Assembly (NCBI RefSeq): GCF_964188315.1
Contig: NC_135659.1
Span: forward strand, 72,726,001-72,790,000
DNA length: 64,000 nucleotides
Source: Podarcis muralis
Taxonomy: Eukaryota
Direction: 5' to 3'
The position numbers were made by a program, and so were the translations under genes. This document shows, in pieces, positions 2,460 through 3,060 of this stretch (the first letter of the stretch is position 1; every line of letters begins with the position of its first letter). The notes beneath the pieces are model-generated. The model saw only the letters and a list, made by a program, of their open reading frames with translations. It had not been told where the DNA came from and did not search any database.

Positions 2460-3060
2460 ATCACGGGGGTGCAGCTCCCCCCCCCCCCCCCGCGCTTGGA
2501 CGTTGCCCCCCACCCGCTTCCATAAAGCAGCGCCCTCAGCACGCGCGGAGCGGCTCTTCCCTCAGCCGGCCTCCCCTCCCCTCCCCGCCCCCTCTTGCTC
2601 CCCCTGGCGGCAAAGCGAGCCTCCCTCTTCCTTCCCACAATGCCCGTTTAGGCTGCTCTGCCTCGGCTCCAAGATGGCGCAGGCGATATTCGAGGCGCTG
2701 GAAGGTAATCGGGGTGGGGGTGTGTGTGTGTGCGTGTAGTCGGGCGGGCTGAGGCCTAGCGCTGGTTGGGGAGGCGCCGAGGCGCCGCAAGGACAGACGC
2801 GGCTGTTCCACGCCGGGCGCCTCCCCTCCCGCCGCTGCGGACGGGGCAGGGGCTGAGAGGAGGACGACGCGGGGCCGCCTCCGGGCAGCGCGGGGGCCGA
2901 GGGAGGGTTCACGGAACAGCCGCTCAGGCGGCCCCGCTGCGCCTCTTTCCCGCGGAGGAGCAGCAGCTGCAGCAGGCGCTGCCAGCCTGCGGGCGCGGCT
3001 CTTCCGGCTGCTGCCGGACTCGGGGGGCGCAGGGAGGCGACGGGTGTCCTTCTGGGTGGG
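2460..3060 (+). promoter_or_regulatory. CpG island / ZNF341 promoter, exon 1 and start of intron 1
   Basis: High GC/CpG content, GC boxes (CCCCGCCCC at 2583-2591), and a YY1-like AAGATGGCG overlapping the start codon. Confidence 0.85.
2674..2704 (+). CDS. ZNF341: ZNF341 exon 1 ([11 protein letters not shown])
   Basis: ATG in AAGATGG context; donor GTAATC at 2705. Confidence 0.95.

Follow-up and report, generated by a model that had tools for sequence, protein, structure and literature searches.

A conserved cluster of predicted ZNF341-binding sites around the first exon of ZNF341 in a lizard

Loss of ZNF341 causes a hyper-IgE syndrome in humans. The human protein binds the core GGAA[C/G][A/G]GC together with an SP1-like GGGAGG element, possibly as a bipartite site with 13–14 nt between the two parts (PMC10620851). 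Intron 1 of the human gene itself carries a ChIP-seq peak with six canonical sites spaced 4–30 nt apart (Beziat et al. 2018, summarised in PMC10620851), and deficient B and T cells have high levels of ZNF341 mRNA, which suggests that the protein lowers its own expression (PMC10620851). Composite elements in which ZNF341 and STAT3 sites overlap have been predicted (MCOT) in ~4.9% of human ZNF341 ChIP peaks (PMC6868382). To date, descriptions of ZNF341 binding to its own intron 1 are confined to human cells, and in these negative feedback has been put forward only as a suggestion.

We analysed a stretch of 64,000 nucleotides from Podarcis muralis (the window, at its full length), in which an earlier note, made from the sequence alone, had picked out two copies of the ZNF341 motif with G-rich tracts beside them and had proposed an autoregulatory module older than the mammal–reptile split. 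The strings and tracts that it listed were all found exactly where it had placed them, and the human core motif, SP1-like partner and own-locus binding that it cited are reported in PMC10620851. We consider it probable that the block at ~2548–2923 is an old, predicted module for self-binding by ZNF341, which would most likely act as a brake on transcription of the gene.

The host gene, taken to be ZNF341 in that note, is indeed a ZNF341 orthologue. The gene model was guided by the Elgaria protein and is intact, and orthology is based on protein identity (88–92% to squamate and turtle proteins and 75–80% to mammalian proteins named zinc finger protein 341) and on synteny, with the gene order PXMP4(-)/ZNF341(+)/CHMP4B(+). 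In the loci of the bird, the frog and the gar, ZNF341 has these same neighbours on its two sides, a Tim17-family and an Snf7-family gene. The search for orthologues was seeded with the frog ZNF341 (P0081); a last-exon query otherwise drew long poly-zinc-finger proteins. The coding features of the window that matter here are the following.

499–615, minus strand: PXMP4-like first coding exon (MGGETMLRTLLYTVNSLLQQRRYQAALAVVKGFRNGAV), upstream of ZNF341 and with its own CpG island
2674–22335, plus strand: ZNF341 orthologue, 15 coding exons encoding 842 aa, with GT..AG at all introns
2674–2704, plus strand: coding part of ZNF341 exon 1, 10 residues and the first base of a Gly codon
2705–5878, plus strand: ZNF341 intron 1, with GT..AG ends; exon 2 begins at 5879
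24481–24670, plus strand: CHMP4B first coding exon (MSGLLGKLFG...), downstream of ZNF341 and with its own CpG island

Reads of two RNA-seq runs (~12% of each), a small run of unknown type and a DNA run were mapped to 2200–6100; the RNA-seq runs gave almost zero depth on exons 1 and 2 and no 2704>5879 joint. Three stretches of intron 1 (3117–3247, 3641–4164 and 5213–5736) are high-copy interspersed repeats: in DNA as well as RNA runs their word depth is thousands of times that of single-copy sequence, and joints and loose ends are numerous. A run of N (23800–23933) lies just upstream of the CHMP4B CpG island.

The protein that would read the sites is strongly conserved in its DNA-binding part. 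Between the lizard and four mammals, 40–43 of 44 zinc-finger DNA-contact residues (positions -1, 2, 3 and 6 of 11 fingers) are identical, and among squamates all 44 are. Identity of the lizard protein to the mammalian ones is 90–95% in the fingers and 69–74% in the remaining protein. Given these near-identical contact residues, the usual C2H2 recognition logic predicts the same DNA specificity for lizard ZNF341 as for the mammalian protein. Elsewhere in the protein, exon 5 (9939–10175) encodes a proline run in the lizard (12 P, Q, 4 P) and a His-Pro repeat in that region in the frog; this is a low-complexity, fast-changing part.

The putative sites lie in and around the CpG island at the start of the gene, and are named here by letter.

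2470–3040, no strand: CpG island (GC 0.73, CpG o/e 0.75–0.82), running from the ZNF341 promoter across exon 1 into the first part of intron 1
2550–2580, minus strand: site C, with core GGAAGAGCCGC at 2550–2560 and GGGAGG 14 nt upstream on its own strand
2629–2650, plus strand: conserved promoter element TTCCCACAATGC... (TTCCCACAATGCCCG...), ~25–45 bp upstream of the ATG and outside the ZNF341 motif set
2799–2833, minus strand: site A, with core GGAACAGCCGC at 2799–2809, a 10-nt spacer and a G-rich SP1-like tract at 2820–2833
2899–2923, plus strand: site B, with GAGGGAGGG at 2899–2907, spacer TTCAC and core GGAACAGCCGC at 2913–2923
2995–3005, minus strand: site D, with core GGAAGAGCCGC and no G-rich partner at the published spacing

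The 9-mer GGAACAGCC has exactly two matches in the 64 kb, at 2801–2809 (minus strand) and 2913–2921 (plus strand). The first belongs to GGCTGTTCCA at 2801–2810 (minus-strand reading TGGAACAGCC) and the second to CGGAACAGCC at 2912–2921; the G-rich tract of site A reads GGCGGGAGGGGAG at 2821–2833 on the minus strand. Sites A and B start +97 and +209 into intron 1, within the CpG island, in line with the 100–200 bp past exon 1 given for them before, and site C lies ~115–125 bp upstream of the ATG. All four cores share GGAASAGCCGC, with a total span of 456 bp (about 2550–3005). From core to GGGAGG, the spacing is n = 14 in site C, n = 15 and n = 10 in site A and n = 6 in site B, with none in site D, so that of the published n = 13–14 only site C fits. 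The module had been described as one of two sites; A and B are real, but a third conserved site (C) upstream of the ATG and the lineage-specific site D had been missed.

A DNA contig of another individual spans 2480–3181 with zero differences. One contig of run X15 (depth ~6) carries T>A at 3000 and G>C at 3006, of which T3000A breaks the core of site D; this site is thus polymorphic in the species. In none of the other species compared was a counterpart of site D found in the 500 bp around the ATG, and, given this and the T3000A polymorphism, site D is probably lineage-specific and young.

The human intron-1 cluster, which we compare by its published description, resembles the lizard block in several respects: the gene is the same, the sites lie at the start of intron 1 in the promoter CpG island, they have the same core in multiple copies with G-rich partners, and the contact residues of the ZNF341 zinc fingers are nearly identical. 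The arrangement differs. In place of six closely spaced sites, intron 1 of the lizard holds a conserved pair, oppositely oriented and separated by 103 nt, with GGGAGG at n15 and n6 as against n13–14; a further site precedes the ATG, and site D is a young addition. The differences in layout and in spacing count against the self-binding reading. Site C has the geometry of the bipartite site in the human STAT3 promoter (GGGAGG n13–14 GGAASRGC), and its spacing (n = 14) is kept in five squamates; it differs from the STAT3 promoter site in sitting in ZNF341's own promoter.

Other features of the island lie beside the motif set. The element at 2629–2650 is 0.92 conserved among sauropsids, with hardly any variation in squamates and the turtle, and recognisable in rodent and frog, and it resembles the core of a ZNF143/Staf site (TTCCCAnAATGC). 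The start codon context CAAGATGGCG (2670–2680) is invariant across all aligned species and also matches the core of a YY1 site (AAGATGGCG). A C-run of ~17 (2474–2492) is found just upstream of the promoter block, and a (GT)n run (2719–2735), without counterpart in other squamates, just past the exon 1 donor.

How often such matches arise by chance depends on where they are counted. In whole-window shuffles, GGAACAGCC occurred 0.56 times on average and 11 of 100 shuffles reached two or more; the whole-window count of this 9-mer is by itself weak evidence. Because the hypothesis fixes the location in advance, shuffles of the island only are the clear test. When 2470–3040 was shuffled with dinucleotides preserved, the expectation for GGAACAGCC fell to 0.009 and none of 5000 shuffles reached two, which bears out the view that two 9-mers at this place are notable. 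The further remark that GC-rich DNA makes the motif likelier had the effect the wrong way round: such DNA makes it rarer, since the middle of the motif is A-rich.

The longer and the looser versions of the motif behave in the same way. There are four matches to the canonical core GGAA[C/G][A/G]GC, two of them the exact GGAACAGCC, where 0.24 were expected in the island (0 of 5000 shuffles). The 11-mer GGAASAGCCGC is found four times in the window, always within 2550–3005, with an expectation of 0.00 (0 of 100 shuffles), and seven times in ~350 kb from ten orthologous loci, always within 5054–5257 when the ATG is set at 5001. We reject a chance origin of the cluster on the island shuffles, the 11-mer count and the scan of orthologous loci.

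We rank as the main rival to self-binding that other promoter factors use the elements. The conserved blocks would then be ordinary CpG-island promoter elements, with SP1/KLF/MAZ-type factors on the G-rich tracts and some other GGAA reader on the cores, and the match to ZNF341 would be incidental. The G-rich tracts are indeed also generic SP1/KLF/MAZ-type promoter elements, a point against the self-binding reading; G-rich boxes are common among promoter elements, and GGGAGG is enriched in this island (9 observed versus 1.7 expected). However, what is conserved is the full 9–11-nt ZNF341 core, beyond GGAA, and neither the remainder of the window nor that of the ~350 kb of orthologous loci contains the 11-mer. 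The CpG islands of PXMP4 and CHMP4B, the window's two other islands, are without the motif (GGAACAGC is absent from both), and the same motif stands in the same intron in rodent and human, where human ZNF341 occupies it (PMC10620851). Use by other factors alone is an unlikely account of the block, though not a negligible one.

The comparison across species drew on ZNF341 loci, each with the ATG set at 5001, from Elgaria, Anolis sagrei, Crotalus tigris, Gekko japonicus, Terrapene, Lagopus muta, Apodemus speciosus, Spea bombifrons and Lepisosteus, a sampling that includes one bird, one turtle and one rodent. The Terrapene locus was obtained via isoform X1. The echidna locus (L006) is uninformative on the sites, as its gene model begins at exon 2 and exon 1 falls outside the 5-kb flank.

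The 9-mer core of site B is exact in six of six species (the window, Elgaria, Anolis sagrei, Crotalus, Gekko and Terrapene), where the site lies +143 to +215 into intron 1 on the plus strand and always has GGGAGG 6 nt upstream. Site A is exact in the window, Elgaria and Anolis and has one substitution in Crotalus, Gekko and Terrapene; the turtle version, GGAAGAGC, still fits the published consensus. In all six species site A is on the minus strand, with a nearly invariant G-rich partner (n14 in Crotalus). Site C is found in all five squamates at n = 14, with C, G or T at core position 5. The sites had been expected to be conserved in other squamates and in birds: the four other squamates and the turtle do have them, with partners, order and orientation, whereas the one bird is without them.

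A six-species alignment shows how closely conservation follows the sites. The values below give, for each segment, the share of the five remaining species that match the window.

Exon 1: 0.98
Intron before site A: 0.45
Site A core: 0.93
Site A G-rich tract: 0.96
Between sites A and B: 0.60
Site B G-rich tract: 0.93
Site B core: 0.89, the shortfall being due solely to misalignment of the Anolis row
After site B: 0.36

The alignable block begins at site C and ends right after site B. Sites A and B and their G-rich partners are conserved to an exon-like degree while the intron between them decays, a clear footprint over the squamate–turtle distance. The same pattern bears on whether the block is kept for other content, such as an alternative first exon or the promoter of an antisense transcript. 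The literature mentions ZNF341-AS1, a human lncRNA, and the RNA reads do not place the lizard transcription start. Against this, indels between the sites are not multiples of three, the inter-site sequence decays, and it is the motif with its G-rich partner that holds most of the conservation, which leaves this explanation highly improbable.

The opposite orientation of sites A and B also makes them an inverted repeat (I9, 2799–2809 and 2913–2923), with 11-bp arms that are 100% complementary and 103 nt between them, and the minimum-energy fold pairs the A arm with the B arm. Pairing into a stem, as RNA or DNA, could then be what has conserved them. Shuffled sequence folds just as well, however (z = -0.58; 57 of 200 shuffles as good); A has changed in Crotalus, Gekko and Terrapene and B has never compensated, which leaves mismatches or wobbles; and neither site C nor the tandem plus-strand sites of the rodent fit a stem. 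We rejected the A/B stem on the fold score and on the lack of any compensatory pair in the six-sauropsid comparison, and regard such a role as hardly credible.

Site B overlaps a possible STAT site. The string TTCACGGAA (2908–2916) fits the GAS pattern TTCnnnGAA and overlaps the site B core; this pattern also overlaps it in Elgaria and Crotalus, and in Terrapene the GAS match is TTCCTGGAA (L010 5210–5218), which shares GGAA with the core. Site B might accordingly be read as mainly a STAT (GAS) element, or as a composite STAT/ZNF341 element, bringing cytokine/STAT input instead of or besides feedback. It is like the MCOT elements predicted in human peaks (PMC6868382) in that, in 4 of 6 sauropsids, its TTCnnnGAA and the ZNF341 core have the GAA half in common, and it differs from them in that the GAS half is not in all species and none is present in the rodent cluster. 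Anolis and Gekko have lost the TTC half and no rodent site has it, whereas the ZNF341 core remains exact; neither site A nor site C overlaps a GAS match; and the four sauropsids with a GAS match are related, so these are not four independent events. A mainly STAT-directed or composite STAT/ZNF341 role of site B is, on this evidence, very unlikely.

A fuller version of the composite idea is distinctly unlikely in our view. It takes site B as a conserved composite (TTCCTGGAACAGCC in the turtle, TTCACGGAACAGCC in the lizards) whose GGAA serves both the STAT GAS half-palindrome and the ZNF341 core, so that STAT3 and ZNF341 would meet there in a two-way loop older than the squamate–turtle split, rebuilt in mammals as tandem ZNF341-only sites. 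If true, the composite site B would close a two-way STAT3–ZNF341 loop on ZNF341's own intron.

We return to the self-binding module and to its age. Apodemus has five sites (at most one mismatch to the 9-mer) from +24 to +244 of intron 1, one on the minus strand followed by four on the plus strand, with gaps of 18–88 nt; GGAACAGC occurs there in four exact copies, a number that local shuffles never reach. The rodent cluster agrees with what is described for the human one, and the minus-then-plus order is common to the rodent cluster and the sauropsid sites. MAFFT places the rodent sites in different sauropsid columns in two alignments, and because of this instability we claim homology for the module and not for single sites. 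The proposal that the cluster predates the mammal–reptile split is therefore supported in part, by a rodent cluster in the same place but not by site-by-site homology. We infer that the mammalian and sauropsid clusters derive from one ancestral cluster; with the rodent sites aligning inconsistently, the two groups may also have gained them independently, and this counts against the self-binding reading.

In Lagopus muta, no site was found within one mismatch of the 9-mer, and the two degenerate cores present have a different arrangement. The frog (Spea bombifrons) has one degenerate core and the gar (Lepisosteus) none. The bird, frog and gar are thus without the sites although their zinc fingers are conserved, a further point against the self-binding reading, and a possible loss of sites in birds is flagged here. 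In Lagopus (L005 5001–5500), a C-rich/G-rich tract is kept at the position of the site A partner and the adjoining ZNF341 core is gone. Lagopus fingers 5 and 6 differ at contact positions (KESD, SYEI).

From these observations we propose the following working. The block holds three conserved motif copies, C upstream of the ATG on the minus strand and A (minus) and B (plus) in the first 220 bp of intron 1, and every conserved core has a G-rich, putatively SP1-like partner 5' on its own strand. The lizard ZNF341 protein would bind this cluster just downstream of its own transcription start and, once bound, would damp transcription of the gene in a negative feedback of the kind put forward for the six human sites. 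We infer both the occupancy by ZNF341 and the sign of the regulation from human data. Such a feedback would probably be at least as old as the squamate–turtle split, and perhaps as old as the amniotes.

The exon-like retention of motif and partner from lizards, snake and gecko to the turtle, together with the rodent cluster, argues that the feedback is under selection. What is new here is a reptile ZNF341 site cluster, as a prediction, which extends a known circuit across species without changing how that circuit is understood. With two intronic sites and one upstream, the lizard would offer a minimal natural module, in which mutational analysis is simpler than in the human gene with its six sites.
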